Positions 1,082 to 34,995 of a stretch of DNA of 52,110 nt are shown here, one piece after another. The stretch is taken from NCBI GenBank assembly GCA_002269645.1, contig NIVC01003242.1, positions 1 through 52,110 on the forward strand, read 5' to 3'. How positions within the stretch are numbered: position 1 is the stretch's first letter; each line of letters begins with the position of its first letter. The notes under the pieces are model-generated. The model saw only the letters and a list, made by a program, of their open reading frames with translations, made no database searches and was not told the DNA's origin. A program made the position numbers and the translations under genes. The DNA comes from Macrostomum lignano. Lineage: Eukaryota.

Positions 1082-2057
1082 CTGAGAAAATGAAAATGAA
1101 AACAAGCCTAGTTTTAAATAAAAATTTTATGTATATAAACAAAATGTGTACAATTTAGTGTAAATATATTGGGAAAGTTTAATTAACTACTTCTCTTGCT
1201 TACCACATCTTAAAAAATTGATAGAAAATTGCGCAGTGTAAATGTTCATGTTAATAAAAAACAAGATTCAAAAGCCGTTGGATGTCCACGACAGGGTTTG
1301 AAGTATTGAAGAGTGAAGACTATCAAAACACGCGCTTCTGATTGCGGATTATTTATTTGTACAATCCTTGCCGATCGATCTAAAAACGCGAGAGAGACAC
1401 AAGAATTTTATACGACCCACAGCTTCACTACACTGTAAATTTGACTGAGTCTTGATTGCTTTCCATTTCAAATTTATTCTTCAAAATTTAAATTCATACT
1501 GTATTGAATACTGTATTGAATACTGTATTGATTAATTGAGAGAGAAACCAACTGAGAGACCAACACTGTATCGCGTCACTCACTGTGCGCGGGCCCAATT
1601 TGCTACATGAACAACCGCGTGGTAGAATCAAACTATATATATAACTGTACATGTAGTGTGCTAGAAAAACTACTAAACTCTGAGATTAACTTCAGGCTTC
1701 ATTCCAGTCTCTAAATTGGCATCCCCTTTCGGAGAACATGTATGTACACATAACTTATTGTATAAGTTAGAGATTAGTAGGTATCCGTCTGTATCTTAAT
1801 ATATACATGTATGTACAAAAAGAGAATTGCATGCAAGTTTGATTTAACTCCTCGAGTGTTTGATAGCAGACAGAAAAGAGTTCGGTGTATTTGTCGACGT
1901 CGTAATTTTTCCATTAAATCAAACCAAACAAAATACATCAGTAAAATTTATCCAGCACAACTAGACGACATAGAATCAGCCATGCCAGTATTTTAATCTC
2001 CCAATTAGTACGAGCACAGCACTATACTACTGCATGCTACTACTGTTTGAACTGACA

Positions 2058-4829: not shown

Positions 4830-7800
4830 TCAGTTGGGGTTGTCGACCACCAGCACGGCCTCGCCGTCCTTGTCGATGCACTGGCAGTTTTCTCTCTCCT
4901 CGCCGTCGATATTTCTGCAGCGAAACGGCGCCGCGCCAATCGGCTTGCAGCTGAAGTCGGCAGCCACGCATTCTGGAATGGGCGAGTGGTGGACTGCCTA
5001 GCAACTGGATTGTTGCGGAGCTGGCCGGGTGCAGTGACTGAGGGAGGGCTGGCAGACATGCAGTGACTGAGGGAGGGCTGGCAGACATGCAGTGACTGAG
5101 AGAGGGCTGGCAGACATGCAGTGACTGAGGAAGGGCTGACAGACATGCAGTGACTGAGAGAGGGCTGACAGACATGCAGTGACTGAGGGAGGGCTGGCAG
5201 ACAGGCAGTGACTGAGGGAGGGCTGGCAGACAGGCAGTGATTGAGGGAGGGCTGGCAGACATGCAGTGACTGAGGGAGGGCTGGCAGACATGCGGTGACT
5301 GAGGGAGGGCTGGCAGACATGCAGTGACTGAGGGAGGGCTGGAAGACATGCAGTGACTGAGGGAGGGCTGGCAGACATGCAGTGACTGAGGGAGGGCTGG
5401 CAGACATGCAGTGACTGACGGAGGCCTGACAGACATGCAGTGACTGAGAGAGGGCTGGCAGACATGCAGTGACTGAGGGAGGGCTGGCAGACATGCAGTG
5501 ACTGAGGTGACTTGGAGCGGCGCTGGAAGGGACGAAGAGCTGTGCTCAGACACTTACTCTTAACTGAGGTTGGCAGGATTGTATTGCCGCTGGAGTCGCA
5601 GCGGAAGTCGTGGCACATGTTGGTCCAAGACTCGCCTTCCAGGTGGTCGCTGCCGTCAATCGGGTCGACGCAGGTGGCCTCTAAAAGTTTGGTTCGCATT
5701 AAGTGCATTTTGTAAGCTCAACTGAGCATGGTGCACTGAATATTTGAGTATTATTCTCCAGCAGTCCTATGACGGCTGGCGTTTGAGGCTACGGTGTCTT
5801 TTCATCGAGAGTCTTTCTTTGGGACTTAAAAGCAAACGATGAAAAAACTTTTGATTAAACCGTGAAATTCTTGGGCAACTCTTGAGCAACTCTCAAGTCT
5901 CAAGCTTTCAGGAAAATTGCACGTAGTATACTAGTATATCTGCATTATTGGTATTAAAGAGCATCACAATACACATGAAATATATAAAAATGAGAAAATG
6001 CAACTTACTGCAACCATTACTTATTTCGTTTTTAAGATGCTTGATGCACGTTTTAACGGTGTCGTACTTGAAGTTTACAGTAGTGGTTTGCATTTTTTCA
6101 GACAGACACGGCGAGATGGACTTGATCTGAACATCAGCTTCGCACAACTTCGGATTTGGCGGCCTCAACTCCATGCAAAGCCGAGCTGAGAAATTTAAAG
6201 CCCAATGCCTTAGCTGATCAAATTTGTTGAAAATGAAGAGGTTTCTGTCGGACTCTGGCGAGGTGATCATCTTCAGCTCGTCACTGTAGTTGCAGGATGT
6301 TGTGTAGTTGCTATGAGCACGGCACACTTATCGCATTTATAAAATAAATCAAAGGCGCACGGGGAGGGCCATAAACAAAGAAGTACAAAGTACAAGTACA
6401 CAACACTGAATAGTCAGGGCTCATAGAGGTGGGATATGTGAAATTCTGAGTCTTTAGTCTCATAGAGAATCGCTGACATACCAAAACTTAACGTGCTGAT
6501 TGCTGAACTTTTTTGGCTCATGGAAGAATGACTAAACTGCTGTGACTTTCAGCAGGTTTAGAGTTAGTGCTTAGGATAGGGGTATTAGGCTCAGGGTTAG
6601 GGTTCAACCTTAAGAGAATCACCCTGCTAATCATTAAATGTTTATAGAGGAATCGCTCTATAATCATAGATACTCATAGGCTCATGAAGGAAATCGCTTG
6701 AACTCTGCGGCTTAGGGGAATTGTTCACATGCTGAGGCTCATGGAAGGATTGCTGATATCCTAAACCCCCCTCGAACCACCCCCCCCCCGGAAAGCTAGC
6801 CCCCTAATTGTATTGGTTCGTGAGAAGATCGCTGAAATGCCAAAGCTCATTGGGGAGTGGCTTAAATCCTTTGGCTCATGGGGGTTTCACAGATGCTTTG
6901 AGCCAAAGCTCATAGGGGATCTGATATCTTAGTCTGGACAGTTGTCTTAATAACTTAATGATTGAAGGCTTTAAAAATTAATGTGGGGCGCAGATTTCTA
7001 GTTCAGTGCTAAATTTACCCCTTCATTGGAGCAAAGGAGAGTTGTCTTATATATTTATAAGTCCACTACAAACAGGTGTCCTTGGTGTGAAATAATAACT
7101 CACTTCATACTGCTTTAAACTTTTCATACGCATTTTAAAGCAGTATAGAAATAAGACATATAAAGTGGCTCGCTGGTTCACGTCAAATTGGCTGTCGACT
7201 ACTGTGCCATAAAGAGTGACACCGTGGTATTTAATATTTTTACATGTATATGATTTGTATACTTTTCAGCCAACCATTGGTGCTAATATCTTCTATCTAA
7301 TTTAAAGAACAAACTAAAAATTAGATCTTAACAAAGAGGCTCACAAATCTAAGTCGTCCGGGTCGCCGACTCCTACCGCATACAGCGTAACATTGTCGTT
7401 TTTTATATCCGACACTGCTTGAAACAGTACTTTGGCGTCGTTGCTCCCACCATCCGTGATGATAACGACGGCTTTGAAAACGTTTCTTCGGCCTTTTGAG
7501 TTAAAAAGCTTCTTGACTTCTTTGAGGGCGGAACCAGTGTTCGTGCCCCGAAACTCATACTTATCTAAAGTCTTGCTTTCGTCAACCTTTCTTATAATTT
7601 CGAAGACGTCGAACTCATCGCCAAGGTTTACAAGCATTTCTAGCAGATCCCTCACATGCGTTTTTGATCCTGAGTAAGACAAATAGCCATTGAAGGATAG
7701 CACGCCAATCCGAACATTTCTCTCTCCAATGTTTAGCGACCGGATTATTGCCTTCGCTGAGTCCACAACAGTGCTGTAGTGACTAAGAATGCTACCAGAT

Positions 7801-10800
7801 TTATCCAGCATTATCACCACATCTGCGACTTGATCTTTGCACTCGCTTGCTCTGACTGGAAAATAGACATCCTTGCAGACTGACTGACTGACTGACTGAC
7901 TGACTGACTGACTGACTGACTGACTGACTGACTGACTGACTGACTGACTGACTGACTGACTGACTGACTGACTGACTGACTGACTGACTGACTTGAGTGA
8001 GTGACTGGCTGACTGACTGACTGACTGACTGACTGACTGACTGACTGACTGACTGACTGACTGACTGACTGACTGACTGACTGACTGACTGACTGACTGA
8101 CTGACTGACTGACTGACTGACTGACTGACTGACTGACTGACTGACTGACTGACTGACTGACTGACTGTGACTGACTGACTGACTGACTGACTGACTGACT
8201 GACTGACTGACTGACTGACTGACTTGAGTGAGTGACTGACTGACTGACTGACTGACTGACTGACTGACTGACTGACTGACTGACTGACTGACTGACTGAC
8301 TGACTGACTGACTGACTGACTGACTGACTGACTGACTGACTGACTGACTGACTGACTGACTGACTGACTGACTGACTGACTGACTGACTGACTGACTGAC
8401 TGACTGACCTGAGTGAGTGAGTGAGTGAGTGACTGACTGACTGACTGACTGACTGACTGACTGACTGACTGACTGACTGACTGACTGACTGACTGACTGA
8501 CTGACTGACTGACTGACTGACTGACTGACTGACTGACTGACTGACTGAGTGACTGACTGACTGACTGACTGACTGACTGACTGACTGACTGACTGACTGA
8601 CTGACTTGAGTGAGTGACTGACTGACTGACTGACTGACTGACTGACTGACTGACTGACTGACTGACTGACTGACTGACTGACTGACTGACTGACTGACTG
8701 ACTGACTGACTGACTGACTGACTGACTGACTGACTGACTGACTGACTGACTGACTGACTGACTGACTGACTGCTAATTGACGAATGAGTGACTGACTGGC
8801 TGACTGACTGGCATTAGTTGGAAGAACAGGAAACTCACAGCAATTCACTTTGTGCTTCTCCTCATATGTCACGCACGACTGTTTCTTTCGGTCGAGAAAC
8901 TGCAGCGTCTCAACGATTTCCGAATTGCCGTCAGCTTGGCATGAGCCAATGCTTCGCTCCATCTTGTAGCAGGAATGTTTCTCGGCTGCAAGTGTTTGCT
9001 GGTGTACTTTACTCCAGTGTTGCCTTATTGTATATAAATTGATTATATATATGACTTTATTTGAACATCAATGATTGTAAATAGATGAAAGTGAAAGTAG
9101 ATATGCAATTAGTGGTTTGGTATGGTATAGTTGAGGTAGGTGCGCTGTGTGGGTGGGAACACCGCAAGATTAGGGTGGGGGCGTGAATTTAGGGGCACCG
9201 TGAGGGCAGCGGTACTGTGTGGGCTGTCACAGGTCGCTGTGGTGTTTTAAAAGTACTGTACGCTAGTACTGTACTGTACGCTCTATCTTGCTGCAGGACT
9301 GCTTCTCGACTGGAAACGGCAAATGTTTAGATAATGTTTTTACCTGGTTTTGGAGCAGTCTTAGTGAAGAATGAATTTCGTTGTGAGCTTACTGGAAGCA
9401 TTACGAGCGTAGTGCAATTTAAAGAGTTACAAGTAATATCAGGTGTTGCATATCATAGCAACGTGTTTCTCGGGATTATTCGCAGATCAAGAATATTCGC
9501 TAGGACATCAGCCTAACGCTGTAAACTTTACATTCGCTACATCTCGCCGTAGTTTAGGGCCAAATGAGTTTCAACTCATTACTACACTACTGTACGCTCG
9601 AGTTCTATGTTTTATCCCGAGGTAAAAAAAACACATGCATGCTGCTTTCTGTTCTGGACTGACCTGACCCCGTAGCTTTCTTCTCTCATCCCACCTTGAA
9701 AAGCAATGTTTTACTAGTGATTTATAACCAGTGGTCGACTGTTAAGAGCTTCTAAATAGCAGCTACGCAAAATAAGCACGTTACCGTAAAATTTTAACCA
9801 GTGCTTCTTTAAATTGAGTTTCATCAGACCACAGGTGTCCAATTGCTAGTGGGACAAATTAGCTCGTGGCTAAGAATAAACTAACACTTAAGATTGTAAC
9901 AAAGTGCCACTGGACTGATCTGAGGTTGCTTGAGGGTGTAGGGTTGCGTGGGAACGTTGACTTTGCTTAAGTAGCTCGTATATGCACATCATTAATTGTT
10001 CTTCCTCGCGTGTACGTGTATCGTGTGTACTAATGTACGTCGTGCCTATTAAATATATATACGCGTGCGCTAACTAGCAGTCGCTCAAGTTTTTCTCGAG
10101 AAGTTCTAACTTACTCAACCAGTGGAGTCCGCGTGAGTTATTACAGAGATAAAGTTTACAACAGGCGGACAGTAAAAGTTGTAATCGATCGATGGTGAAC
10201 CTAGGCAAGGGCCAAACTGGAGGGCCAGGAGAGCGCCAAAGTGGAAAGTCGGGAGATGGTGAACCTAGGCAAGTGCCAAACTGGAGGGCCAGGAGAGCGC
10301 CAAAGTGGAAAGTCGGGAGAGGGTGAACCTAGGCAAGGGCCAAACTGGAGGGCCAGGAGAGCGCCAAAGTGGAAAGTCGGGAGATGGTGAACCTAGGCAA
10401 GGGCCAAACTGGAGGGCCAGGAGAGCGCCAAAGTGGAAAGTCGGGAGATGGTGAACCTAGGCAAGGGCCAAACTGGAGGGCCAGGAGAGCGCCAAAGTGG
10501 AATATCGGGAGATGGTGAACCTAGGCAATGGCCAAACTGGAGGGCCAGGAGAGCGCCAAAGTGGAAAGTCGGGAGATGGTGAACCTAGGCAAGGGCCAAA
10601 CTGGAGGGCCAGGAGAGCTCGCCAAAGTGGAAAGTCGGGAGAGGGTGAACCTAGACAAGGGCTGTCGCCCACCAAGGCCATTAGGCCATAAGTTTCGGTA
10701 CAGCGCTCGGGAAGAGATTCTCGCGCGTTCAGCCAGTCGGAACAGTAAACGTGCTTATTTGTAGCTGATTCAGTGGATAGATGACATTCTGATGTTACAA

Positions 10801-13800
10801 CCACGCAGCGTGCTCAGCGGGTACGATCCGGGAAGAGAGTACACAAGGCACACGGAGCTCGGCCTTCAGCACCTCTATCTCGCAACTCTTTAGCGGGTTT
10901 TCACCTACCAGTACCGCGCCAACGCTGTCACAGGACACTTTGGTGCTAACAGTACCTAAAAATAGCTGTTTATACTTCGTTGCATCAAAAGAGCAAGCGG
11001 CTGTTACGAAGCAGTGTCCAGTTTTTAAAGCTGCCCCGACCCGGAATTTCGTTCACATAGTTTCACAGTTAACTCGGACAATCTAGTTGATCAAACGATA
11101 TTGGGCCAGAGTCACTTCCAGGCCTAGATGATACCTCGGCTTAGGGGCACTCTGTTCTGGCCTCATCCTTGCCTCTAGGGTCCTTGCCTATCCAGTCATT
11201 CTTTCCATAAAAATCTGTTGACAATAGCTCGTATCACCACAAGAAGTACTTTTGTGGGCAAACGCGTCTTCAAAATTGCACTGTAATATACGTGAACCGC
11301 AATAAATTAACTAATAGACCAACTAAATGACAAGACAGTTAATGGTCCGCCTTTATTAGTAGTGCCTCGTGTGCTGGTTTACTTTCTACTTCAAGTACAT
11401 GTTAAACTACTCATATTTGCAATTTACGCTCGTACAAGTATACTGGGAATTTTATGCAAATCAGAAAACTTTTCATTTTTTCCAACCCTAAGGCCCAAGA
11501 AGTCTTTGCGTTTGAGTAAAAATTGAGCCCTCAGAGAGAAAGAAATCAGCAAATGGAGTAACTCACCGCAAGACTGAAATGATCGAGCAATCTGCTGTCT
11601 GCAGACTTCCATGCCAGATGAAGTGAAAGCACTGTCGTTTACCGTTAATACGTGCTGCGACTTTCCAAAGCAAGTTTCACGCTTCACAGTCCGACCCGAG
11701 CTTTTGCAGGCTGGCTTCGGGCAAACTTTGTTGTTTAGCGACTTGGCGGACTCCATAGCCTTGTTTGTGTTCTTGAAGAGCAGGTAGTTGGTTCCAAAAA
11801 TGGCCTTCAGTTCGTGGCTAAAATTTATTTTGCCGACAAGATGCAAGCTAAATCATCATGTTATATTATCCACTATGTCAGGATGTAATTCAACCCACTT
11901 ATACAATCGAATTTAAGTTTAAATAAGCTATTCTAGGTACTAAGCCACAAATGGGTGTTCAACTTGAGTGCCAAAACTACGCTCGCACAAATGCTGGGTG
12001 CAAGTCCCTGGTCCCTGGCCCGCCAAGTACTTTAGTGCCCAACATTCAATAGATGTTTGTGAGAGCGGAGGACACTTACGGAAGTAGTTGTCGTTACGGG
12101 GCTTTTAGGACAAAAATATAGCCTATCCCCTTAGATCAACATCTACTATACGCTCGTATCTACGCTCGTATTCATACATAATGCTCTTATAATTATATTT
12201 AAAATTAGCTAGCCAATGCAATACTTACTGCCATCTCATGTAAGGGCGATAAAATAGACAACCACCCCTTCCCGTCTAGGACAGCAAAAAAATCAACATC
12301 TATCTATTGGTCATTGTTCATTGGTCATTGGTATCATTGATAAGTAGTTTGCTTCTTCTATTGACACTATCTATTTAATAAACATTAATTTTTCCACATA
12401 TTAAGCTGTCACATTTGTAAAGCATACACTCTTTGACATGCTAATTTGAAAAGAATAGAGAAATTTGGCGGGAAAAATTCATAGCGGTATACAGGCAGGC
12501 CTTTTAAATATCACTTTTTTCAGAAATGATATCAGCACTCAAATGACAGATGCAGCCATTGGGGCATGCATTGGTCAGTACCTGCTAGATGCAAATCAGC
12601 GACTTGCGAGAAGGAATGAAGTGGAACAGTGACGCAACTGTGACGTTGCCAGTTTAAGGTGATCCCGCAAAAGGGCCGTTGGACTACAATTTCACTACAA
12701 TTTCTCATTTAAAATTCTCCAATCTTGTATTCTCACGTTTACTTGTAGTAGCGCCCAGCGAATCTGTATCAGTTGCTAAATCACTGCGTACTTTGTAATC
12801 TTTGCGTACGTTTGTAGAATCTCGCGCGATCGATAATTTCTGTTTCTTGTTTTTCCCTCGCCAGCCAATGAAAACTCTCCGCATATATTATGCTAACCCT
12901 CCTGCGCTCCTTGATTAACCCCGCCTGGCGGCGGGCTGGGGGTTTTCACGCTCTTCCCCTCGTCGCTCGCTTTTCCTTTTGGTTTCTCCCTTCCTTGCCT
13001 TTCCTTCTCTCTCCTTATTTCGCACTGGGACTGGGACGCACTGGGACCGCTGATTATTTATCCATCGTGTGCTTGTCTATCATTTTACATGTAATTTTGA
13101 GTTCGAGTGAAGTTGAAATAATGATGCCCTTAGCCATCTTTTCTAGCAAAGAAATATTTCAAGCTATTCTACTTGTATTTGATAGTTTGTTTTATGGCTT
13201 AGGAAACTTCCAACCAACCTTTAGTAACAGCAGATAGATTAAAATAGCATTTAAGGCCACGAGGCAATGTTCCTCTTTCGTTCGTTAAATCAATTTTTCG
13301 TTTGAGCACGAACAGTACTAACTTAAAACGACAAAAAAGATAACAGCATGTCGTGGAAACCTTCGTCAGCATTTAGAAAAGCATGAAATTGAAATCGCGC
13401 CAAGGCGAGCGAGCTCCCGCATTGTGAAATTAATGTTGCACAGCTCCAGTGCGGGACGCACTTGCCCAGGGGGTTACTTTAAATGAAGGTGCTGCAGGGC
13501 GACCAGTCATGTCGTTGAATATAATTGTATGTTTTTAAGCAGTAGCTGACTTATAAATTATTTTCTTCGTACCCCTTCTAGTTTTCTAGTGATATCACCG
13601 CAGTTTTAACCATAGACAGTTGCTAAAAGACAGTTGTTGCTTTACTTTCTTACACGCCTTGGCGCGATTTCAATCTCATGCTCTTCTAAATGCTACGAAG
13701 GTTTCCACGACATGCTGTTATCGTTTTTTGTCGTTTTTTAAGTTAGTACTGTTCGTGTTCAAACGAAAAAGTAATTTAACGAATGAAAGAGAAAAATTGC

Positions 13801-14676
13801 CTGCCACGGCACGAATACTACATGAAAATGAATACGGCATCAATACGACATTGCGACATACATGCGATGTAAAAACATCACGTTGTGCGGGACGACGTCG
13901 TTTCGACGTCGTTTCTCTCAGTGGGTGGGGTTGGTTTATCCTTCAAATAAACTTTCTGGCTGCACCATTATTAAAAAAAGTTGCTTTTTAACGGATGATA
14001 AAACTGTGCTATAAAGACTTTCAGCGTTCAGGCATCAACTGAAACTATATATAGCTATGAAAACAAATTGTATGTGAGCTAAAGAAAAAAAAACAATAAA
14101 ATTTAATCACCTGTTCCACAATCCACCGATTCCGATTGCGTGCACTGCGTTTCCCGTCAACTTCAGGACTGCGACTTCCGACTTAATCGAAGCCAGTTCC
14201 GCGTCGCTCGATCCCGTTATTCTCTCAGCGCACTGCCTGTCCTTTACCAGAGCTAAGAGTCTTGGAGTCGGAGCAGCCCTGGCCTTGTTGAGCACGGACT
14301 CCCGAGCCAGCTTGATGCCCTTCGAGATTTCGGCTCGTTCGGAACTCATCGTCAGCCTGTCGACCGCGGAGTTGAAGTCCGACAGAGACGTCAGGTCGTC
14401 GAAGTTGGCGAGAACCTGCGCAGTCTGCGACATGCCGATCAGAGCCAGTCGAGTTTTTGTGGGACCGATTGGAAATTTAGAGACCAAGGCCTTCACCTCT
14501 GAGAGCAGCCTGTCGAACTGTGTTTGAGAGCATGAAGACGATGTGTCCACTGCGACCACCAAGTCCAGGTTGATGCAGGGGCTTGTCGAGCAGCTGAGCT
14601 CAATCTGATGCACCAGTATTAAGAGAGCAATGACAGACAGAACCTTCCAGCATCTTGGATAAGTGTTGGAGAGCAT
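4830..14676 (-). CDS. Secreted double-VWA protein, copy A (671 aa, 7 exons)
   Basis: Exons 14676-14111, 11817-11567, 8985-8839, 7855-7345, 6283-6009, 5680-5558, 4972-4830. All introns are GT-AG with phases 2,1,1,2,1,1, and the exons sum to 2016 nt with no internal stop. It has a signal peptide, VWA1 (DLVVAVDTSSS), VWA2 (DKSGS..GTNTG..ITDG) and a C-terminal 8-Cys domain, with no TM segment. Confidence 0.88.
5030..5508. repeat. 29-bp minisatellite in intron 6 of copy A (~16 units)
   Basis: Unit GCAGTGACTGAGGGAGGGCTGGCAGACAT with point variants. It lies between the GTAAGT donor (5557) and the CCAG acceptor (4973). Confidence 0.95.
6400..6930 (-). repeat. Copy of a degenerate interspersed repeat family (CTCAGCAATTCCC/AGCCTTGA-type subrepeats, TTAGGG-like motif) in intron 4 of A
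   Basis: Reverse-complement similarity to 20500-20760, 45470-46460 and 47400-47770. A near-identical copy lies at ~27380-27900 in C. Boundaries are approximate. Confidence 0.45.
7878..8772. repeat. (GACT)n tetranucleotide array in intron 3 of copy A
   Basis: ~0.9 kb of GACT with GAGT/CTTGAGT interruptions, between the donor at 8838 and the acceptor at 7856. Confidence 0.97.
10194..10660. repeat. 64-bp minisatellite in intron 2 of copy A (~7 units)
   Basis: Unit GGTGAACCTAGGCAAGGGCCAAACTGGAGGGCCAGGAGAGCGCCAAAGTGGAAAGTCGGGAGAT starts at 10194, 10258, 10322, 10386, 10450, 10514 and 10578. Confidence 0.95.
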
Positions 14677-15199
14677 TTCGATTTGTGAGCCGATTATTAA
14701 AGTGTAAGCTACGCTTTTCTTTCACAGCTAAAACTCTATGAAGTATCGCTTAAGCTGGTCCCTTTGACTTTCGTACTTATATTGAAGACTTTGGTTCGTT
14801 TGTCTTTGGCAGAAGCTCCTTTCAGTGTTACAGAAACGCGTCTCACTGTACCTAAGCAAGTGAAATATTTACTGCCATAAACAACTAAAGTTTTTACATA
14901 CCCTTTGCGCTTGAATTCTGAGCTTTAAATTGACAGTGTAAGAAATTAAGTAGTTTTTTTGCAAATCAAATTTCTGCTATAATGCAGATGTTCATGGGGC
15001 CCGATCCATGCTCGAAATGCTGGTCTGCTATTAGTATAGATGGCTTTTGTTGTTGTTGGGGGAGAGAGCTTGTCTCGCCTGGGATCAGCCTAGGGAAAAG
15101 CTCTACCGCGGGGGTATTTAAGAAGTTTGCAAAAATCACTGGCCTGAAAATGCACCACTGAAACGAATTAACCGCCATACACGCCCCATCGACCCACCC

Positions 15200-16431: not shown

Positions 16432-17028
16432 TATGCGGCTTACGCCGGTTGGAGTGCTCGCGTTCTGATTGGCTGGGGGGTGTCCGTCTGCCCAGACCGG
16501 CCTAGGCCGGGTGGGGGGTTTGGTGTTTGCTGAATCATGCTTTTAATTACAATATAAGTGCGCACCGGCTTTTCAAGGCTTTGTGACTTTGAACTTGGCT
16601 TTGAAATCGCTTCTCGCATCTTATTCATTTGGCCATGCTGCCTCAAGGTACAACATGGCGACGAGTCTGAGCATTTCCGAGCCACGCGTGTTTCTCGCCC
16701 ACCCAGGACAGCTACACACGCCTTAGAATCGTTGGATCGAAGGATTCAAGATCTACCTGGAGGCCTTGGACCTAAAGAAAGCATCGGATGCACGCAAGAA
16801 GGCGATTCTCGTTCATCTGCTAGGCGAGGAAGGCCAGAGAGTCTACGCGCTGAGGAATCTGCCACGACGAGCGTTGATACGTTTGACAAGCTGGTGGCTG
16901 CACTGACAACGATCTTCGGTCAGTCGCACAGCACAATCAGCAACCGCTACAAGCTCAAGTCGCGTTCCCAGATGCCAGGTGAGCCAGTCAGCCAGTTCGT
17001 CGACGCCCTCCGAGAACTCGCGGCATAG
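16432..17028 (+). mobile_element. Ty3/Gypsy remnant: probable 5' LTR, PBS and truncated gag
   Basis: ...CAACA (16655) is followed by TGGCGACGAG (16656-16665), complementary to a tRNA-Ser(GCU) 3' end. The gag-like sequence reads MATSLSISEPRVFLAHPG..*NRWIEGFKIYLEAL..KKAILVHLLGEEGQRVY, then after a frameshift NRYKLKSRSQMPGEPVSQFVDALRELAA. Confidence 0.75.
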
Positions 17029-17624
17029 AGAATCCTCCATAGACGCGTTTCAGTAACACTGAAAGTAGCTTTTGCCAAAGACAAACAAAGCAAGAGATAA
17101 CTCAAGTTTTGACTTACCCATTGCACTAAAATTCTGAATTCTAAAAGTCTCAATGTGGTTTTGTAGTTAAACTTTCGATACCATAGTTTACAGCTGATGC
17201 AAAGTAACAAGCACTAATATATAAATAACATTTCGGTATTGTGCAAAACTTTCCATTTAATCGGTCCGGTTTTTTCTCAAGCTTAGATACATTTGTAATT
17301 CGATTTGTAGTCGCATCAGGCGCACAGCATTCAGGCTAAGTTAATAACAGAGGTTCGATTGCTTGAGTTTTGAGACGCATCGATTCGGTGTAGATGAGAA
17401 GCAGAATTAATTGGCGATTAATAATAAAGCCAACACAAAACACAGACTAATAAATTTTATAAAGGTGTGATGAGACGCATCAGGGGCTGCTCATAAGTAT
17501 ACCAACATCAGATCAACAAGTAACTTCGACTGTTATTAACGGACTAGTTCTTTCACACAGCAAGCCACCGATTATTCCAGCTTGATTCGAGGGCCGCGAT
17601 ACCAATCAGCTGACTGTCTGCCTG

Positions 17625-24807
<7,183 letters not shown>

Positions 24808-24886
24808 CTCGATTTGTGCAGAGCTGATTATTAAGTGTAAGCTACGCTTTTCTTTCGCAGCCTAAACTCTATAAAGTATCGCTTTA

Positions 24887-24929
24887 GCTGGTCCAAGGAC
24901 AACTTGATCCTTGTTGTCCTTGGCTGGTC
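24887..24929. mobile_element. 29-bp palindromic insertion with 7-bp direct repeat (putative P-element footprint) in the B promoter/5'UTR
   Basis: GCTGGTC [CAAGGACAAC TTGATCCTT GTTGTCCTTG] GCTGGTC. A and C have a single GCTGGTC at this site. Confidence 0.7.
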
Positions 24930-25592
24930 CCTTGACTTTCGTACTTATATTGAAGCCTTTGGTTCGTTTGTCTTTGGCAAAAGCTCCTTTCTGCGTTATT
25001 GAAAAGCGTCTCACTGTAACTGTACACGGGGCTTCTGAGCAAGTAAAATATTCACTGCCATAGACAACTAAAGTTTTGACTTTCCTTTTGCACAAAAAAT
25101 CTGGATTCTAAAATACAATTCAAGGTGGCTTTTTTACAAGTTAAAATTTCGATACAATGGTTTACAGCTATTGCAAGGTAACAAGCACTAATACATATAT
25201 CTTATTTCGGTATCAGAGAAAGCTTTCCATTTAATCATTCCGGTTTATTCTCAAGCTTAGATAATTTGATTTGTAGTTGCATCAGGCGCATAACTTTCAG
25301 GCTAAGTTAATAACAGATGTCTGATTGCTTGTGTTTTGAGACGCATCGATTCGGTGTAAATGAGAAGCAGCAGAATTAATTGACAATTAGTAACAAAACC
25401 AACACAAAACACAGACTAATAAATTTTATAAAGGTGTGATGAGACGCATCAGAGGCTGCTCATAAACAAATATCTGATCAACATGTAACTTCGACTATTA
25501 TTAACGGACAAGTCCTTCTTTTACACAGCAATCCACCGATTAATCCAGCTTGATTCGAGGGCTGCGATTCGGATCCGCTGTCTGTCTGCCTG

Positions 25593-28500
25593 TCAGTTGT
25601 CGACCACCAGCACGGCCTCGCCGTCCTTGTCGATGCACTGGCAGTTTTCTCTCTCCTCGCCGTCGATGTTTCTGCAGCGAAACGGCGCCGCGCCAATCGG
25701 CTTGCAGCTGAAGTCGGCAGCCACGCATTCTGGAATGGGCGAGTGGTGGACGGCCTAGCAACTGGATTGTTGCGGAGCTGACCGGGTGCAGTCAGACACG
25801 CAGTGACTGAGGGAGGGCTGGCAGACATGCAGTGACTGAGGGAGCTCTGGCAGGCATGCAGTGACTGAGGGAGGGCTGGCAGACATGCAGTGACTGAGGG
25901 AGCTCTGGCAGGCATGCAGTGACTGAGGGAGGGCTGGCAGACATGCAGTGACTGAGGGAGGGCTGGCAGACATGCAGTGACTGAGGGAGGGCTGGCAGAC
26001 ATGCAGTGACTGAGGGAGGGCTGGCAGACATGCAGTGACTGAGGGAGGGCTGGCAGACATGCAGTGACTGAGGGAGGGCTGGCAGACACGCAGTGACTGA
26101 GGGAGGGCTGGCAGACATGCAGTGACTGAGGGAGCTCTGGCAGGCATGCAGTGACTGAGGGAGGGCTGGCAGACATGCAGTGACTGAGGGAGGGCTGGCA
26201 GACATGCAGTGACTGAGGGAGCTCTGGCAGGCATGCAGTGACTGAGGGAGGGCTGGCAGACATGCAGTGACTGAGGGAGGGCTGGCAGACATGCAGTGAC
26301 TGAGGGAGGGCTGGCAGGCATGCAGTGACTGAGGGAGGGCTGGCAGACATGCAGTGACTGAGGGAGGGCTGGCAGACATGCAGTGACTGAGGGAGGGCTG
26401 GCAGACATGCAGTGACTGAGGGAGGGCTGGCAGACATGCAGTGACTGAGGGAGGGCTGGCAGACATGCAGTGACTGAGGTGACTTGGAGCGGCGCTGGAA
26501 GGGACGAAGAGCTGTGCTCAGACACTTACTCTTAACTGAGGTTGGCAGGATTGTATTGCCGCTGGAGTCGCAGCGGAAGTCGTGGCACATGTTGGTCCAA
26601 GACTCGCCTTCCAGGTGGTCGCTGCCGTCAATCGGGTCGACGCAGGTGGCCTCTAAAAGTTTGGTTCGCATTAAGTGCATTTTGTAAGCTCAACTGAGCA
26701 TGGTGCACTGAATATTTGAGTATTATTCTCCAGCAGTCCTATGACGGCTGGCGTTTGAGGCTACGGTGTCTTTTCATCGAGAGTCTTTCTTTGGGACTTA
26801 AAAGCAAACGATGAAAAAACTTTTGATTAAACCGTGAAATTCTTGGGCAACTCTTGAGCAACTCTCGAGTCTCAAGCGTTCAGGAAAATTGCACGTAGTA
26901 TACTAGTATATCTGCATTATTGGTATTAAAGAGCATCACAATACACATGAAATATATAAAAATGAGAAAATGCAACTTACTGCAACCATTACTTATTTCG
27001 TTTTTAAGATGCTTGATGCACGTTTTAACGGTGTCGTACTTGAAGTTTACAGTAGTGGTTTGCATTTTTTCAGACAGACACGGCGAGATGGACTTGATCT
27101 GAACATCAGCTTCGCACAACTTCGGATTTGGCGGCCTCAACTCCATGCAAAGCCGAGCTGAGAAATTTAAAGCCCAATGCCTTAGCTGATCAAATTTGTT
27201 GAAAATGAAGAGGTTTCTGTCGGACTCTGGCGAGGTGATCATCTTCAGCTCGTCACTGTAGTTGCAGGATGTTGTGTAGTTGCTATGAGCACGGCACACT
27301 TATCGCATTTATAAAATAAATCAAAGGCGCACGGGGAGGGCCATAAACAAAGAAGTACAAAGTACAAGTACACAACACTGAATAGTCAGGGCTCATAGAG
27401 GTGGGATATGTGAAATTCTGAGTCTTTAGTCTCATAGAGAATCGCTGACATACCAAAACTTAACGTGCTGATTGCTGAACTTTTTTGGCTCATGGAAGAA
27501 TGACTAAACTGCTGTGACTTTCAGCAGGTTTAGAGTTAGTGCTTAGGATAGGGGTATTAGGCTCAGGGTTAGGGTTCAACCTTAAGAGAATCACCCTGCT
27601 AATCATTAAATGTTTATAGAGGAATCGCTCTATAATCATAGATACTCATAGGCTCATGAAGGAAATCGCTTGAACTCTGCGGCTTAGGGGAATTGTTCAC
27701 ATGCTGAGGCTCATGGAAGGATTGCTGATATCCTAAACCCCCCTCGAACCACCCCCCCCCGGAAAGCTAGCCCCCTAATTGTATTGGTTCGTGAGAAGAT
27801 CGCTGAAATGCCAAAGCTCATTGGGAGTGGCTTAAATCCTTTGGCTCATGGGGGTTTCACAGATGCTTTGAGCCAAAGCTCATAGGGGATCTGATATCTT
27901 AGTCTGGACAGTTGTCTTAATAACTTAATGATTGAAGGCTTTAAAAATTAATGTGGGGCGCAGATTTCTAGTTCAGTGCTAAATTTACCCCTTCATTGGA
28001 GCAAAGGAGAGTTGTCTTATATATTTATAAGTCCACTACAAACAGGTGTCCTTGGTGTGAAATAATAACTCACTTCATACTGCTTTAAACTTTTCATACG
28101 CATTTTAAAGCAGTATAGAAATAAGACATATAAAGTGGCTCGCTGGTTCACGTCAAATTGGCTGTCGACTACTGTGCCATAAAGAGTGACACCGTGGTAT
28201 TTAATATTTTTACATGTATATGATTTGTATACTTTTCAGCCAACCATTGGTGCTAATATCTTCTATCTAATTTAAAGAACAAACTAAAAATTAGATCTTA
28301 ACAAAGAGGCTCACAAATCTAAGTCGTCCGGGTCGCCGACTCCTACCGCATACAGCGTAACATTGTCGTTTTTTATATCCGACACTGCTTGAAACAGTAC
28401 TTTGGCGTCGTTGCTCCCACCATCCGTGATGATAACGACGGCTTTGAAAACGTTTCTTCGGCCTTTTGAGTTAAAAAGCTTCTTGACTTCTTTGAGGGCG

Positions 28501-31500
28501 GAACCAGTGTTCGTGCCCCGAAACTCATACTTATCTAAAGTCTTGCTTTCGTCAACCTTTCTTATAATTTCGAAGACGTCGAACTCATCGCCAAGGTTTA
28601 CAAGCATTTCTAGCAGATCCCTCACATGCGTTTTTGATCCTGAGTAAGACAAATAGCCATTGAAGGATAGCACGCCAATCCGAACATTTCTCTCTCCAAT
28701 GTTTAGCGACCGGATTATTGCCTTCGCTGAGTCCACAACAGTGCTGTAGTGACTAAGAATGCTACCAGATTTATCCAGCATTATCACCACATCTGCGACT
28801 TGATCTTTGCACTCGCTTGCTCTGACTGGAAAATAGACATCCTTGCAGACTGACTGACTGACTGACTGACTGACTGACTGACTGACTGACTGACTGACTG
28901 ACTGACTGACTGACTGACTGACTGACTGACTGACTGACTGACTGACTGACTGACTGACTGACTGACTGACTGACTGACTGACTGACTGACTGACTGACTG
29001 ACTGACTGACTGACTGACTGACTGACTGACTGACTGACTGACTGAGTGAGTGACTGACTGACTGACTGACTGACTGACTGACTGACTGACTGACTGACTG
29101 ACTGACTGACTGACTGACTGACTGACTGACTGACTGACTGACTGACTGACTGACTGACTGACTGACTGACTGACTGACTGACTGACTGAGTGACTGACTG
29201 ACTGACTGACTGACTGACTGACTGACTGACTGACTGACTGACTGACTGACTGACTGACTGACTGACTGACTGACTGACTGACTGACTGACTGACTGACTG
29301 ACTGACTGACTGACTGACTGACTGACTGACTGACTGACTGACTGACTGACTGACTGACTGACTGACTGACTGACTGACTGACTGACTGACTGACTGACTG
29401 ACTGACTGACTGACTGACTGACTGACTGACTGACTGACTGACTGACTGACTGACTGACTGACTGACTGACTGACTGACTGACTGACTGACTGACTGACTG
29501 ACTGAGTGACTGACTGACTGACTGACTGACTGACTGACTGACTGACTGACTGACTGACTGACTGACTGACTGACTGACTGACTGAGTGAGTGACTGACTG
29601 ACTGACTGACTGACTGACTGACTGACTGACTGACTGACTGACTGACTGACTGACTGACTGACTGACTGACTGACTGACTGACTGACTGACTGACTGACTG
29701 ACTGACTGACTGACTGACTGACTGACTGACTGACTGACTGACTGACTGACTGACTGACTGACTGACTGACTGGCTAATTGACGAATGAGTGACTGACTGG
29801 CTGACTGACTGGCATTAATTGGAAGAACAGGAAACTTACAGCAATTCACTTTGTGCTTCTCCTCATATGTCACGCACGACTGTTTCTTTCGGTCGAGAAA
29901 CTGCAGCGTCTCAACGATTTCCGAATTGCCGTCAGCTTGGCATGAGCCAATGCTTCGCTCCATCTTGTAGCAGGAATGTTTCTCGGCTGCAAGTGTTTGC
30001 TGGTGTACTTTACTCCAGTGTTGCCTTATTGTATATAAATTGATTATATATATGACTTTATTTGAACATCAATGATTGTAAATAGATGAAAGTGAAAGTA
30101 GATATGCAATTAGTGGTTTGGTATGGTATAGTTGAGGTAGGTGCGCTGTGTGGGTGGGAACACCGCAAGATTAGGGTGGGGGCGTGAATTTAGGGGCACC
30201 GTGAGGGCAGCGGTACTGTGTGGGCTGTCACAGGGCGCTGTGGTGTTTTAAAAGTACTGTACGCTAGTACTGTACTGTACGCTCTATCTTGCTGCAGGAC
30301 TGCTTCTCGACTGGAAACGGCAAATGTTTAGATAATGTTTTTACCTGGTTTTGGAGCAGTCTTAGTGAAGAATGAATTTCGTTGTGAGCTTACTGGAAGC
30401 ATTACGAGCGTAGTGCAATTTAAAGAGTTACAAGTAATATCAGGTGTTGCATATCATAGCAACGTGTTTCTCGGGATTATTCGCAGATCAAGAATATTCG
30501 CTAGGACATCAGCCTAACGCTGTAAACTTTACATTCGCTACATCTCGCCGTAGTTTAGGGCCAAATGAGTTTCAACTCATTACTACACTACTGTACGCTC
30601 GAGTTCTATGTTTTATCCCGAGGTAAAAAAAACACATGCATGCTGCTTTCTGTTCTGGACTGACCTGACCCCGTAGCTTTCTTCTCTCATCCCACCTTGA
30701 AAAGCAATGTTTTACTAGTGATTTATAACTAGTGGTCGACTGTTAAGAGCTTCTAAATAGCAGCTACGCAAAATAAGCACGTTACCGTAAAATTTTAACC
30801 AGTGCTTCTTTAAATTGAGTTTCATCAGACCACAGGTGTCCAATTGCTAGTGGGACAAATTAGCTCGTGACTAAGAATAAACTAACACTTAAGATTGTGG
30901 CAAAGTGCCACTGGACTGATCTGAGGTTGCTTGAGGGTGTAGGGTTGCGTGGGCATGTTGACTTTGCTTAAGTAGCTCGTATATGCACATTATTAATTGT
31001 TCTTCCTCGCGTGTACGTGTATCGTGTGTACTAATGTACGTCGTGCCTATTAAATATATATACGCGTGCGCTAACTAGCAGTCGCTCAAGCTTTTCTCGA
31101 GAAGTTCTAACTTACTCAACCAGTGGAGTCCGCGTGAGTTATTACAGAGATAAAGTTTACAACAGGCGGACAGTAAAAGTTGTAATCGATCGATGGTGAA
31201 CCTAGGCAAGGGCCAAACTGGAGGGCCAGGAGAGCGCCAAAGTGGAAAGTCGGGAGATGGTGAACCTAGGCAAGGGCCAAACTGGAGGGCCAGGAGAGCG
31301 CCAAAGTGGAAAGTCGGGAGATGGTGAACCTAGGCAAGGGCCAAACTGGAGGGCCAGGAGAGCGCCAAAGTGGAAAGTCGGGAGATGGTGAACCTAGGCA
31401 AGGGCCAAACTGGAGGGCCAGGAGAGCGCCAAAGTGGAAAGTCGGGAGATGGTGAACCTAGGCAAGGGCCAAACTGGAGGGCCAGGAGAGCGCCAAAGTG

Positions 31501-34500
31501 GAAAGGGAGATGGTGAACCTAGGCAAGGGAGGGTGGAACCTAGGACAAGGGCTGTGGAAAGTCGGGAGAGGGTGAACCTAGACAAGGGCTGTCGCCCACC
31601 AAGGCCATTAGGCCATAAGTTTCGGTACAGCGCTCGGGAAGAGATTCTCGCGCGTTCAGCCAGTCGGAACAGTAAACGTGCTTATTTGTAGCTGGTTCAG
31701 TGGATAGATGACATTCTGATGTTACAACCACGCAGCGTGCTCAGCGGGTACGATCCGGGAAGAGAGTACACAAGGCACACGGAGCTCGGCCTTCAGCACC
31801 TCTATCTCGCAACTCTTTAGCGGGTTTTCACCTACCGCGCCAACGCTGTCACAGGAAACTTTGGTGCTAACAGTACCTAAAAATAGCTGTTTATACTTCG
31901 TTGCATCAAAAGAGCAAGCGGCTGTTACGAAGCAGTGTCCAGTTTTTAAAGCTGTCCCGACCCGGAATTTCGTTCACATAGTTTCACAGTTAACTCGGAC
32001 AATCTAGTTGATCAAACGATATTGGGCCAGAGTCACTTCCAGGCCTAGATGATACCTCGGCTTAGGGGCACTCTGTTCTGGCCTCATCCTTGCCTCTAGG
32101 GTCCTTGCCTATCCAGTCATTCTTTCCATAAAAATCTGTTGACAATAGCTCGTATCACCACAAGAAGTACTTTTGTGGGCAAACGCGTCTTCAAAATTGC
32201 ACTGTAATATACGTGAACCGCAATAAATTAACTAATAGACCAACTAAATGACAAGACAGTTAATGGTCCGCCTTTATTAGTAGTGCCTCGTGTGCTGGTT
32301 TACTTTCTACTTCAAGTACATGTTAAACTACTCATATTTGCAATTTACGCTCATACAAGATACTGGCAAATCAGAAAACTTTTCATTTTTTCCAACCCTA
32401 AGGCCCAAGAAGTCTTTGCGTTTGAGTAAAAATTGAGCCCTCAGAGAGAAAGAAATCAGCAAATGGAGTAACTCACCGCAAGACTGAAATGATCGAGCAA
32501 TCTGCTGTCTGCAGACTTCCATGCCAGATGAAGTGAAAGCACTGTCGTTTACCGTTAATACGTGCTGCGACTTTCCAAAGCAAGTTTCACGCTTCACAGT
32601 CCGACCCGAGCTTTTGCAGGCTGGCTTCGGGCAAACTTTATTGTTTAGCGACTTGGCGGACTCCATGGCCTTGTTTGTGTTCTTGAAGAGCAGGTAGTTG
32701 GTTCCAAAAATAACCTTCAGTTCGTGGCTAAAATTTATTTTGCCGACAAGATGCAAGCTAAATCATCATGTTAAATTATCCACTATGTCAGGATGTAATT
32801 CAACCCACTTATATAATCGAATTTGAAATCGAAATGATATCAGCACCCAAATGACAGATGCAGCCATTGGGGCATGCATTGTTCAGTACCTGCTAGATGC
32901 AAATCAGCGACTTGCGAGAAGGAATGAAGTGGAACAGTGACGCAACTGTGACGTTGCCAGTTTAAGGTTATCCCGCAAAAGGGCCGTTGGACTACAATTT
33001 CACTACAATTTCTCATTTAAAATTCTCTAATCTTGTATTCTCACGTTTACTTGTAGTAGCGCCCAGCGAATCTGTATCAGTTGCTAAATCACTGCGTACT
33101 TTGTAATCTTTGCGTACGTTTGTAGAATCTCGCGCGATCGATAATTTCTGTTTCTTGTTTTTCCCTCGCCAGCCAATGAAAACTCTCCGCATATATTATG
33201 CTAACCCTCCTGCGCTCCTTGATTAACCCCGCCTGGCGGCGGGCTGGGGGTTTTCACGCTCTTCCCCTCGTCGCTCGCTTTTCCTTTTGGTTTCTCCCTT
33301 CCTTGCCTTTCCTTCTCTCTCCTTATTTCGCAACCAACCTTTAGTAACAGCAGATAGATTAAAATAGCACTTAAGGCCACGAGGCAATTTTCCTCTTTCG
33401 TTCGTTAAATCAATTTTTCATTTGAACACGAACAGTACTAACTTAAAACGACAAAAAAGATAACAGCATGTCGTGGAAACCTTCGTAGCATTTAGAAAAG
33501 CATGAAATTGAAATCGCGCCAAAGCGAGCGAGCTCCCGCATTGTGAAATTAATGTTGCACAGCTCCAGTGCGGGACGCACTTGCCCAGGGGGTACTTTAA
33601 ATGAAGGTGCTGCAGGGCGACCAGTCATGTCGTTGAATATAATTGTATGTTTTTAAGCAGTAGCTGACTTATAAATTATTTTCTTCGTACCCCTTCTAGT
33701 TTTCTAGTGATATCACCGCATTTTTAACCATAGACAGTTGCTAAAAGACAGTTGTTGCTTTACTTTCTTACACGCCTTGGCGCGATCTCAATCTCATGCT
33801 CTTCTAAATGCCACGAAGAATTCCACGACATACTGTTATCGTTTTTTGTCGTTTTTTAAGTTAGTACTGTTCGTGTTCAAACGAAAAAGTAATTTAACGA
33901 ATGAAAGAGAAAAATTGCCTGCCACGGCACGAATACTACATGAAAATGAATACGGCATCAATACGACATTGCGACATACATGCGATGTAAAAACATCACG
34001 TTGTGCGGGACGACGTCGTTTCGACGTCGTTTCTCTCAGTGGGTGGGGTTGGTTTATCCTTCAAATAAACTTTCTGGCTGCACCATTATTAAAAAAAGTT
34101 GCTTTTTAACGGATGATAAAACTGTGCTATAAAGACTTTCAGGGTTCAGGCATCAACTGAAACTATATATAGCTATGAAAACAAATTGTATGTGAGCTAA
34201 AGAAAAAAACAATAAAATTTAATCACCTGTTCCACAATCCGCCGATTCCGATTGCGTGCACTGCGTTTCCCGTCAACTTCAAGACTGCGACTTCCGACTT
34301 AATCGAAGCCAGTTCCGCGTCGCTCGATCCCGTTATTCTCTCAGCGCACTGCCTGTCCTTTACCAGAGCTAAGAGTCTTGGAGTCGGAGCAGCCCTGGCC
34401 TTGTTGAGCACGGACTCTCGAGCCAGCTTGACGCCCTTCGAGATTACGGCTCGTTCGGAACTCATCGTCAGCCTGTCGACCGCGGAGTTAAAGTCCGACA

Positions 34501-34792
34501 GAGACGTCACGTCGTCGAAGTTGGCGAGAACCTGCGCAGTCTGCGACATGCCGATCAGAGCCAGTCGAGTTTTTGTGGGACCGATTGGAAATTTAGAGAC
34601 CAAGGCCTTCACCTCTGAGAGCAGCCTGTCGAACTGTGTTTGAGAGCATGAAGACGATGTGTCCACTGCGACCACCAAGTCCAGGTTGATGCAGGGGCTT
34701 GTCGAGCAGCTGAGCTCAATCTGATGCACCAGTATTAAGAGAGCAATGACAGACAGAACCTTCCAGCATCTTGGATAAGTGTTGGAGAGCAT
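25593..34792 (-). CDS. Secreted double-VWA protein, copy C (669 aa, 7 exons; near-identical to A)
   Basis: Exons 34792-34227, 32727-32477, 29986-29840, 28825-28315, 27255-26981, 26652-26530, 25729-25593; the sum of 2010 nt is open. It differs from A by ~4 aa substitutions and a 2-aa C-terminal deletion (VVDN* vs VVDNPN*). Confidence 0.88.
25797..26478. repeat. 29-bp minisatellite in intron 6 of copy C (~23 units)
   Basis: Same unit. It includes variant units (GGGAGCTCTGGCAGGCAT) not seen in A. Confidence 0.95.
28848..29775. repeat. (GACT)n array in intron 3 of copy C
   Basis: ~0.93 kb with GAGT interruptions only, between the donor at 29839 and the acceptor at 28826. Confidence 0.97.
31195..31590. 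repeat. 64-bp minisatellite in intron 2 of copy C (~5 units plus rearranged partials)
   Basis: Units start at 31195, 31259, 31323, 31387 and 31451, followed by truncated units. Confidence 0.93.
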
Positions 34793-34995
34793 TTCGATTT
34801 GTGAGCCGATTATTCAAGTGTAAGCTACGCTTTTCTTTCACAGCTAAAACTCTATGAAGTATCGCTTAAGCTGGTCCCTTTGACTTTTTCGTACTTATAT
34901 TGAAGCCTTTGCTTCGTTTGTCTTTGGCAAAAGCTCCTTTCTGTGTTACTGAAATGCGTCTCACTGTAACTGTACACGGGGATTCTGAGCAAGTA
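34793..34995 (-). promoter_or_regulatory. Conserved ~200-bp proximal promoter/5'UTR of the VWA genes (copy C instance)
   Basis: Near-identical upstream of A (14677-14880), B (24808-25050) and D (50581-50781, inverted). A TATAAG-like box lies at 34894-34899, ~100 bp before the ATG. Confidence 0.5.

Follow-up and report, generated by a model that had tools for sequence, protein, structure and literature searches.

Interlocus gene conversion that homogenises duplicated genes while a functional segment escapes is known from the peptide-binding exons of the major histocompatibility complex and from the opsin, RH and globin clusters, and models that set conversion against selection have reportedly been developed by Innan and Teshima. 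Among proteins, proximal thread matrix protein 1 (PTMP1) of the mussel is a secreted, collagen-binding byssus protein with two VWA domains. Both are the closest described systems to the subject of this work, a tandem cluster of genes for secreted two-VWA proteins in Macrostomum lignano, contained in a stretch of 52,110 nt (contig NIVC01003242.1, assembly GCA_002269645.1), hereafter called the window. As in the conversion-escape families, old paralogues carry patches of low synonymous divergence (dS), non-coding flanks included, beside segments of high dS, different exons support incongruent topologies, and the divergent segment, here the second VWA domain (VWA2), encodes a predicted ligand-binding surface. 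The cluster differs from those families in that the pattern is new for the gene family, the organism and the domain, and in that tract borders lie at conserved intronic micro- and minisatellites as well as at exon borders. Overall, the results show short-tract gene conversion between old paralogues.

Gene models were built by hand from the reading frames and splice sites of the window. This yielded three intact seven-exon open reading frames (ORFs) on the minus strand (A, B and C), with canonical GT-AG borders in all introns, and the beginning of a fourth gene, D:

14676-14111, 11817-11567, 8985-8839, 7855-7345, 6283-6009, 5680-5558, 4972-4830, minus strand: gene A, 671 aa
24807-24242, 23193-22940, 21816-21670, 21569-21059, 18699-18425, 18156-18034, 17767-17625, minus strand: gene B, 672 aa
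34792-34227, 32727-32477, 29986-29840, 28825-28315, 27255-26981, 26652-26530, 25729-25593, minus strand: gene C, 669 aa
50782..52110, plus strand: gene D, 5' part only (exon 1 at 50782-51350, exon 2 at 51657-51910), the remainder lying beyond the window end

The cluster is ordered <-A <-B <-C ... D-> <-E, where E (Mlig003734g1) is a further member, and the full seven-exon D and E genes were taken from GenBank contig NIVC01001851 (loci L001 and L002). The A protein is identical to BOX15_Mlig004332g2 (P0002; NCBI/UniRef), D corresponds to BOX15_Mlig014655g1 (P0005), and a sixth type, F, is known only as UniRef A0A1I8J873. All close database matches are from M. lignano, and the labels of the A, D, E and F proteins do not go beyond 'hypothetical' or 'VWFA domain-containing'. 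B is absent from public protein sets, its closest database match being 80% identical and of the A type. Seven exons with the same phases are found in A, B, C, D and E; the conservation of exon lengths (511 nt for exon 4, 275 nt for exon 5) and phases asserted in the initial annotation of this DNA holds for A, B and C, and the corresponding lengths are 481 and 278 nt in D and 508 and 275 nt in E.

Self-comparison of the window revealed two units of ~10 kb each (4718-14938 and 25481-35074) that match at 96-98% in long blocks spanning the greater part of each unit, introns included, while a third unit, at ~17095-24998 and containing B, matches the A and C units in patches only. A and C are 100% identical in exons 3-6 and intron 4, and 91-99% identical elsewhere, the long matching blocks of their units being interrupted by intron 1 indels and repeat-length changes. 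C and A are thus a very recent segmental duplicate of ~10 kb, an event separate from the conversion between A/C and B.

The A, B, C and D proteins share one layout, namely a signal peptide, a first VWA domain (VWA1), a Cys-rich linker, VWA2 and a Cys-rich tail. The signal-like peptide is a hydrophobic N-terminal segment recognised by eye, and the tail may be VWC-like, judging by its Cys/Gly/Trp pattern. Pfam PF00092 matched two VWA stretches in each of A (E=3e-45) and B (E=2e-46). PTMP1 (PDB 4cn8, 4cn9 and 4cnb) was the top PDB match both by sequence (E=1.9e-11) and in a Foldseek comparison of folds that spanned the two VWA domains (E=6e-14). Like the cluster proteins, it comes from an invertebrate, is secreted, and has its two VWA domains in tandem, together with a metal ion-dependent adhesion site (MIDAS) motif. 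However, PTMP1 has 454 aa, is 16-17% identical and lacks both the ~130-aa Cys-rich linker and the ~180-aa Cys-rich tail; the likeness is one of fold and sequence, implying neither orthology nor collagen binding. VWA2 also superposes on VWF A3, the integrin alpha1 and alpha2 I domains and collagen VI N5, with MIDAS residues present, but at 20-25% identity and in another protein context. As to matrilins, with EGF repeats and a C-terminal coiled coil, and cochlin-vitrin, with an N-terminal LCCL domain, these features do not occur in the A and B proteins, for which Pfam at E<=0.1 gave VWA-type families only and no EGF, coiled-coil or LCCL match.

Within M. lignano, a second subfamily (BOX15_Mlig013408g1/g2 and Mlig006715g1; 673 aa) has the same architecture and is colinear with the cluster proteins at 27% identity over residues 36-667, VWA2 being followed by the same Cys-rich tail pattern; fragments from other organisms, P0021 (Logan) and P0059 (JGI), also contain the VWA2 and tail module. 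The second subfamily and the fragments are distant (24-34% identity) and stand outside the converting cluster. The fragments indicate that the VWA2-plus-tail module is older than this cluster. The secreted two-VWA family is known so far mainly from Macrostomum.

Uneven divergence and homogenised tracts

The comparison of A and B, recomputed from the gene models exon by exon, gave the following values:

Exon 1: amino-acid identity 0.942, dS 0.06
Exon 2: amino-acid identity 0.964, dS 0.14
Exon 3: amino-acid identity 0.959 (2/49 differ), dS 0.11
Exon 4: amino-acid identity 0.497 (85/169 differ), dS 0.73
Exon 5: amino-acid identity 0.703 (27/91 differ), dS 0.44
Exon 6: amino-acid identity 0.976, dS 0.08
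Exon 7: amino-acid identity 0.957, dS 0.07

Every per-exon identity that had been read from a manual alignment in the initial annotation was reproduced. Synonymous divergence between B and A/C is therefore uneven by about 10-fold, from 0.06-0.14 in the frame exons to 0.70-0.73 in exon 4, which runs counter to the uniform dS named at the outset as evidence against concerted evolution. For intron 4, with 1061 nt in A and 2359 nt in B, alignment identity is at chance level (42%), in line with the earlier description of this intron as unrelated, and neither intron 1 nor intron 4 can be aligned between the two genes. The two exons that depart from the frame are:

21059..21569, minus strand: exon 4 of B, encoding the divergent VWA2, 511 nt (counterparts at 7345-7855 in A and 28315-28825 in C)
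18425..18699, minus strand: exon 5 of B, 275 nt, whose first ~55 nt are A-like (95%) and whose remainder is 75-82% identical

Exon 4 of B is 49.7% identical to that of A/C in amino acids and 63-65% in nucleotides.

We then extended the comparison to the whole cluster by computing per-exon dS (Nei-Gojobori-type) for all pairs among A, B, D and E. Exons 1 (dS 0.06-0.12) and 7 (0-0.07) are similar in all pairs, exons 4 (0.43-1.3) and 5 (0.38-1.26) are divergent, and exons 2-3 are low for A-B only (0.11-0.14), the other pairs reaching 0.36-0.76. Conserved ends around a variable middle are therefore a property of the whole family, B versus A/C being the case in which more exons have been homogenised. 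The genealogies change along the gene as well. Quartet-informative sites support AB|DE in exons 2-3 (26/29), BD|AE in exon 4 (32/52), AB|DE in the first part of exon 5 and then mostly BD|AE, and AD|BE in exon 7 (3/3), and this heterogeneity of pattern across exons is highly significant (chi-square 49, p=6e-8; Fisher p=5e-10). In addition, a GENECONV-like permutation test identified runs of A-B identity in exons 2 and 3 (p<0.0005).

Against a baseline nucleotide identity of ~70% between paralogues, introns included, the homogenised tracts of B stand out clearly:

24238..24998, minus strand: B tract 1, ~190 nt upstream of the ATG plus exon 1, ending at most 4 nt from the exon 1 donor
22822..23189, minus strand: B tract 2, exon 2 plus 118 nt of intron 2, 91% identical to A
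21590..22077, minus strand: B tract 3, in which exon 3 is flanked by ~260 nt from the end of intron 2 and ~80 nt from the start of intron 3, at 94% identity with A and C
17548..17983, minus strand: B 3'-end tract, comprising the 29-nt minisatellite of intron 6, exon 7 and ~77 nt of 3' flank

Tract 1 is 91% identical to A and C with its upstream part included, and 96.6% in exon 1 alone. In tract 2, A and B agree at 46 polymorphic sites in a row, and in tract 3, which ends at an (AGTC)n repeat, they agree at 25 (p<0.0005 for each). The 3'-end tract matches A and E at 95% and D at 97%, and at all three informative sites exon 7 of B agrees with E and not with A. Across the family, one tract covers ~200-280 nt upstream of the ATG, at 89-91% identity, together with exon 1, and is limited in E to the greater part of that exon; the other takes in the intron 6 minisatellite, exon 7 and at most ~100 nt of the 3' flank. 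Between A/C and B only, the tracts further include exons 2, 3 and 6 and the initial ~55 nt of exon 5. As non-coding flanks are homogenised too, dS is uneven and topologies switch, coding constraint cannot be the sole cause, and recombination between the paralogues is required. Low dS in the tracts against a baseline of 0.43-1.3, flanks at 89-97% identity, incongruent topologies and significant runs are what gene conversion leaves behind, and they bear out the earlier proposal that the frame evolves in concert while old, divergent VWA2 versions are kept. Of the checks suggested for that proposal, exon genealogies, compared as quartet site patterns among the cluster genes A, B, D and E, proved incongruent (p=6e-8), and the search for GENECONV-type runs was positive for A-B.

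Some of the tract borders lie at repeats, which were mapped with Tandem Repeats Finder (TRF):

7878..8810, no strand assigned: (GACT/AGTC)n microsatellite in intron 3 of A, ~233 copies (TRF), just upstream of the VWA2 exon
28848-29811: (AGTC)n in intron 3 of C, ~235 copies; B keeps a short remnant at ~21590-21640
5030..5507 (A, 16.5 copies), 17825-17983 (B, 5.5 copies) and 25793-26479 (C, 23.7 copies), no strand assigned: 29-nt minisatellite of intron 6 (TRF)

In A, B, D and E, the (AGTC)n repeat occupies a shared intron position directly before the VWA2 exon, and the 29-nt minisatellite is present in intron 6 of D and E as well. As the exon 3 tract ends on its 3' side at (AGTC)n and the exon 7 tract is bounded on its 5' side by the 29-nt minisatellite, these repeats may start or stop conversion tracts.

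Some further features of the exons and repeats were recorded. In exon 1, seven of the 11 amino-acid differences between A and B fall in one short patch (14111-14200 in A; 24242-24330 in B), which reads VAVLKLTGN..AI in A/C and VAAVRSMES..AV in B, with a near-identical AAARSMES form in D and E, and which looks like a small mosaic inside an otherwise homogenised exon. The 29-nt minisatellite is free of stop codons in every minus-strand frame and thereby produces three overlapping spurious ORFs of up to 400 aa. Intron 2 contains a 64-nt minisatellite in A (10191-10662, 7.3 copies) and C (31192-31529, 5.3 copies), for which no B counterpart appeared in the A-B alignments or in the TRF output for B. 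Intron 3 of C (28826-29839) is almost pure (AGTC)n, has a length of 1014 nt, a multiple of 3, and is open together with exons 3 and 4 (28311-29963), so that its retention would add ~338 aa of (SQSV)n. A coding role for intron 3 was rejected, as the intron measures 983 nt in A, where it would shift the frame, and 100 nt in B, and the annotated A, D and E models splice it.

Genealogy and reliability of B

Outside the homogenised tracts, B follows D. The two genes are colinear at 69-75% in 58 nt at the start and 146 nt at the end of intron 1, in exon 4 with 113 nt of intron 4, and from the end of intron 4 through exon 5, intron 5 and exon 6. On both the acceptor and the donor side of exon 4, the flanking sequences of B and D are visibly the same, the nearest relative of B exon 4 is D exon 4 (dS 0.43), and the 3' part of B exon 5 follows D at old-paralogue level. 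B therefore reads as a D-related old paralogue carrying at least five short A/C-like patches, each of ~100-850 nt. Because the ends of its introns 1 and 4 share the D-like genealogy of exon 4, it is the frame that was overwritten, and VWA2 is resident rather than inserted. A single unequal crossover was discarded as the origin of B, since at least five alternations between A-like and D-like sequence would be needed.

As B had not been annotated before, its reliability was evaluated against other contigs of the assembly. The 3' half of B is present at 99.1% identity in contig NIVC01000075 (GCA_002269645.1), from which the 5' half is absent; this contig (NIVC01000075.1, locus L004 ~5200-8070) has a gap of 2764 N right after the (AGAT)n of B intron 4 (window ~20464). 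The gap and the absent 5' half are probably why B was never annotated. In the window, the junction of exons 3 and 4 of B lies within a 100-nt, repeat-poor intron in contiguous sequence (21570-21669), and a chimeric assembly of B is unlikely.

Copy number also differs between contigs. Contig NIVC01001851.1 (loci L001-L003) has one A/C-type gene where the window has A-B-C (compared with window 1946-7061 and 33327-52110), which may reflect either copy-number variation, between haplotypes or subgenomes, or assembly collapse. Its flanks are ~99% identical to the window, against 99.86% for NIVC01000075, and with its one A/C-type gene it was not taken as the same haplotype as the window. The A/C-type gene of this contig has a 1.25-kb insertion in intron 4. 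Moreover, a second copy of E, E2 (locus L005, 9672-15939 of NIVC01000097.1), differs from E by 8 substitutions and bears single-base deletions in exons 1 and 7 that break the frame, and in its NCBI model translation begins at an internal Met and the end is out of frame; E2 is either a pseudogenised homeologue or a product of long-read indel errors.

VWA2 and the recognition question

To examine the escaping domain, AlphaFold2 was run with a shallow family alignment of 7 rows, to which B contributed its exon 4 and 5 translations only. The full-length model has a mean predicted local distance difference test (pLDDT) score of 48.9 and is usable for VWA2 only (residues ~330-530, pLDDT ~80); VWA1, which is matched by Pfam, is poorly modelled (pLDDT <50). 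The VWA2 model shows the canonical VWA fold, with a target-normalised TM-score of 0.81-0.87 and a root-mean-square deviation of 2.2-2.8 A to solved VWA domains. As had been claimed, both VWA2 versions retain a full MIDAS (D-x-S-x-S after beta-A, T in the alpha3-alpha4 loop and D after beta-D). Types A, B, D and F all have its residues D339, S341, S343, T426 and D456, and E has Thr at 343. VWA1 keeps D-T-S-S-S and the Asp, and its Thr position is Ala in the PTMP1 alignment, so that VWA1 probably lacks a canonical MIDAS.

When the VWA2 residues of types A, B, D and E were classed by the secondary structure of the model and by VWA fold topology, mean pairwise identity was 0.29 in the MIDAS-face loops (0.23 without the five invariant metal ligands), compared with 0.54 in the bottom loops, 0.62 in strands and 0.48 in helices (permutation test of top versus bottom, p=0.003). 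The data thus agree roughly with the prediction that VWA2 differences would concentrate on the MIDAS face, and the loop pattern would fit a diversification of the ligand-binding face.

The initial annotation saw in this arrangement the signature of a variable recognition system. In public data, only about 5-6 VWA2 types are found (A/C, B, D, E and F), and VWA2 hardly varies between haplotype or homeologue copies: E and E2 differ at 2/508 nt, D and its second copy D2 at 0/481, and A and the single A/C-type gene of NIVC01001851 at 1/511. Differences between such copies are more frequent in exons 1-2 (7/566 and 6/251). Low variation in VWA2 with higher variation in exons 1-2 is the opposite of what is expected of a polymorphic recognition domain and is what conversion of the frame predicts; the high variation typical of recognition families is not seen in VWA2, in what is a weak test based on the genome of one inbred line. 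Regarding selection, crude Nei-Gojobori estimates, in which exon 4 dS is partly saturated, gave dN/dS (the ratio of nonsynonymous to synonymous divergence) of 0.42-0.93 in exon 4, against 0.13-0.55 in the A-C and A-B frame exons. With the same estimates, values in the MIDAS-face loops are at most 0.9, and below 1 everywhere, so that the positive selection on the binding surface that would mark a recognition family (dN/dS >1), and for which a check had been proposed, does not appear.

In the literature, the gene ids of the VWA cluster were not found in full-text searches or in the searched M. lignano paper supplements. The adhesive proteins Mlig-ap1 and Mlig-ap2 were considered as relatives and set aside, being unrelated VWD/TSP/EGF proteins. 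Altogether, this is a clear, if ordinary, instance of mosaic gene-family evolution and not a demonstrated recognition system. It would be a bold and, in our opinion, improbable extension to see in the cluster a Macrostomum-specific toolkit for extracellular recognition or adhesion (reproductive, in seminal fluid or egg, self/non-self, or towards the substrate), in which constant VWA1 and tail anchor or multimerise the protein, each VWA2 MIDAS face has its own ligand, and repeat-bounded conversion and copy-number change reshuffle the repertoire in populations.

Competing explanations and other features of the window

We consider it probable that the cluster was shaped by interlocus gene conversion that acted in patches on old tandem paralogues and spared the VWA2 exon. 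Anciently diverged paralogues would have been repeatedly overwritten in parts by short-tract interlocus conversion, with tracts ending wherever similarity is lost, namely at exon/intron borders and at the two intronic repeats, (AGTC)n and the 29-nt unit. Conversion would bypass the VWA2 exon and the greater part of exon 5, possibly because the ligand surface on the MIDAS face of each paralogue's VWA2 is functionally maintained, and these exons may by now also be too divergent to pair. The products may be extracellular matrix or adhesive-type adaptor proteins, in which anchoring or multimerisation would fall to the constant VWA1 and Cys-rich tail and the metal-dependent VWA2 would bind a paralogue-specific ligand.

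Several points weigh against this explanation. A tract that ends a few nucleotides from the exon 1 donor is unusually sharp for conversion at the DNA level, although loss of homology in the intron may account for it. Selection as the cause of the VWA2 escape is not supported by dN/dS (0.4-0.9, with dS partly saturated), and neither expression evidence for B nor a function for any member was found in the literature. Contig NIVC01000075 has its gap precisely at B and the opposite orientation to the window there, with the 3' half of B joined to A. Finally, the structural classes rest on fold topology and on a model whose 377-392 loop is of low confidence, and top loops are variable in most VWA families, so that the bias is weak evidence by itself.

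Other explanations were weighed on the same data. VWA2 modules (exons 4-5) could have been shuffled between otherwise uniform genes to give combinatorial variants, as the initial annotation suggested when it spoke of a swappable cassette: the divergent block sits between repeats at shared intron positions, which could be recombination sites, exon lengths and phases are compatible, and copy number differs between haplotypes or assemblies, NIVC01001851 having one A/C-type gene. Such an exchange is nevertheless unlikely and the swappable cassette was not upheld, since, the whole-gene duplicate A/C excepted, each VWA2 type is confined to a single frame, and the D-like intron 1 and 4 ends of B go with its exon 4, which makes the old part the backbone and not an insert. 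In B, the A/C-like sequence is spread over at least five separate short patches instead of one frame, and VWA2 is nearly invariant between haplotype or homeologue copies. An assembly artefact, with B a chimera or mis-join at repeats, or with A, B and C an over-expanded single locus, might be suspected from the N-gap of NIVC01000075 at the (AGAT)n of B, the reversed 3' half and missing annotation of B, and the single gene of NIVC01001851. It is very unlikely, given the exon 3-exon 4 junction in a 100-nt, repeat-poor intron, the intact ORF of 672 codons with canonical splice junctions and the independent presence of the 3' half at 99.1%; moreover, the divergent parts of B match no known copy closely (the best, D, at ~70%), and B can therefore not have been stitched together from known genes.

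Explanations without exchange between the genes fare worse still. If all genes were equally old, with exons 1 and 7 held by selection, synonymous sites included, and the middle relaxed or diversifying, one would understand why high identity often ends almost exactly at exon borders and why VWA1 and the tail are nearly invariant in protein. However, upstream, intronic and 3' flanking DNA is also 90-97% identical, three different topologies are backed in different exons, and exons 2-3 are homogenised between A/C and B only, not in D or E, which leaves this possibility with very little credit. The least probable alternative is that of recent duplicates whose central region underwent targeted hypermutation, for example by repeat-associated error-prone repair, a process proposed for some venom and immune gene families. 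Large microsatellites do adjoin the variable exon, and dS as well as dN is raised in exons 4-5, but a change of rate alone cannot produce incongruent topologies, intron 1, far from the repeats, is also at old-paralogue divergence, and A and C carry the largest repeats and yet are 100% identical in exon 4.

Under patchy conversion among old paralogues, the cluster offers a worked example of how short-tract conversion and functional divergence can split a gene into homogenised and escaping exons, with the backbone genealogy still readable in introns and conserved intronic repeats at tract borders. In addition, the M. lignano gene set gains B, an unannotated and apparently functional gene. The family as a whole is uncharacterised, and on present evidence it reveals no new kind of recognition system; nonetheless, a lineage-restricted secreted two-VWA family with a variable metal-dependent face is a reasonable candidate for RNA interference and in situ hybridisation.

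A few other features of the window were noted. In intron 1 of B, an ORF at 23587-23901 (plus strand) has a weak match to a GIY-YIG nuclease (E=5e-4, below the Pfam cut-off) and could be a fragment of a Penelope-like retroelement. Retroelement remnants were also found in the A-B spacer, at 16558-17028 (plus strand; weak gag/PNMA-like match), and in the C-D spacer, at 36844-37846 (plus strand; weak gag zinc-knuckle and aspartyl-protease matches). Downstream of A, the minus strand of 1-2929 carries, in the public annotation, a gene of 143 aa (~2061-2929) with no Pfam match, as well as the start of a gene of ~1240 aa whose counterpart on contig NIVC01001851 contains a TUDOR domain.

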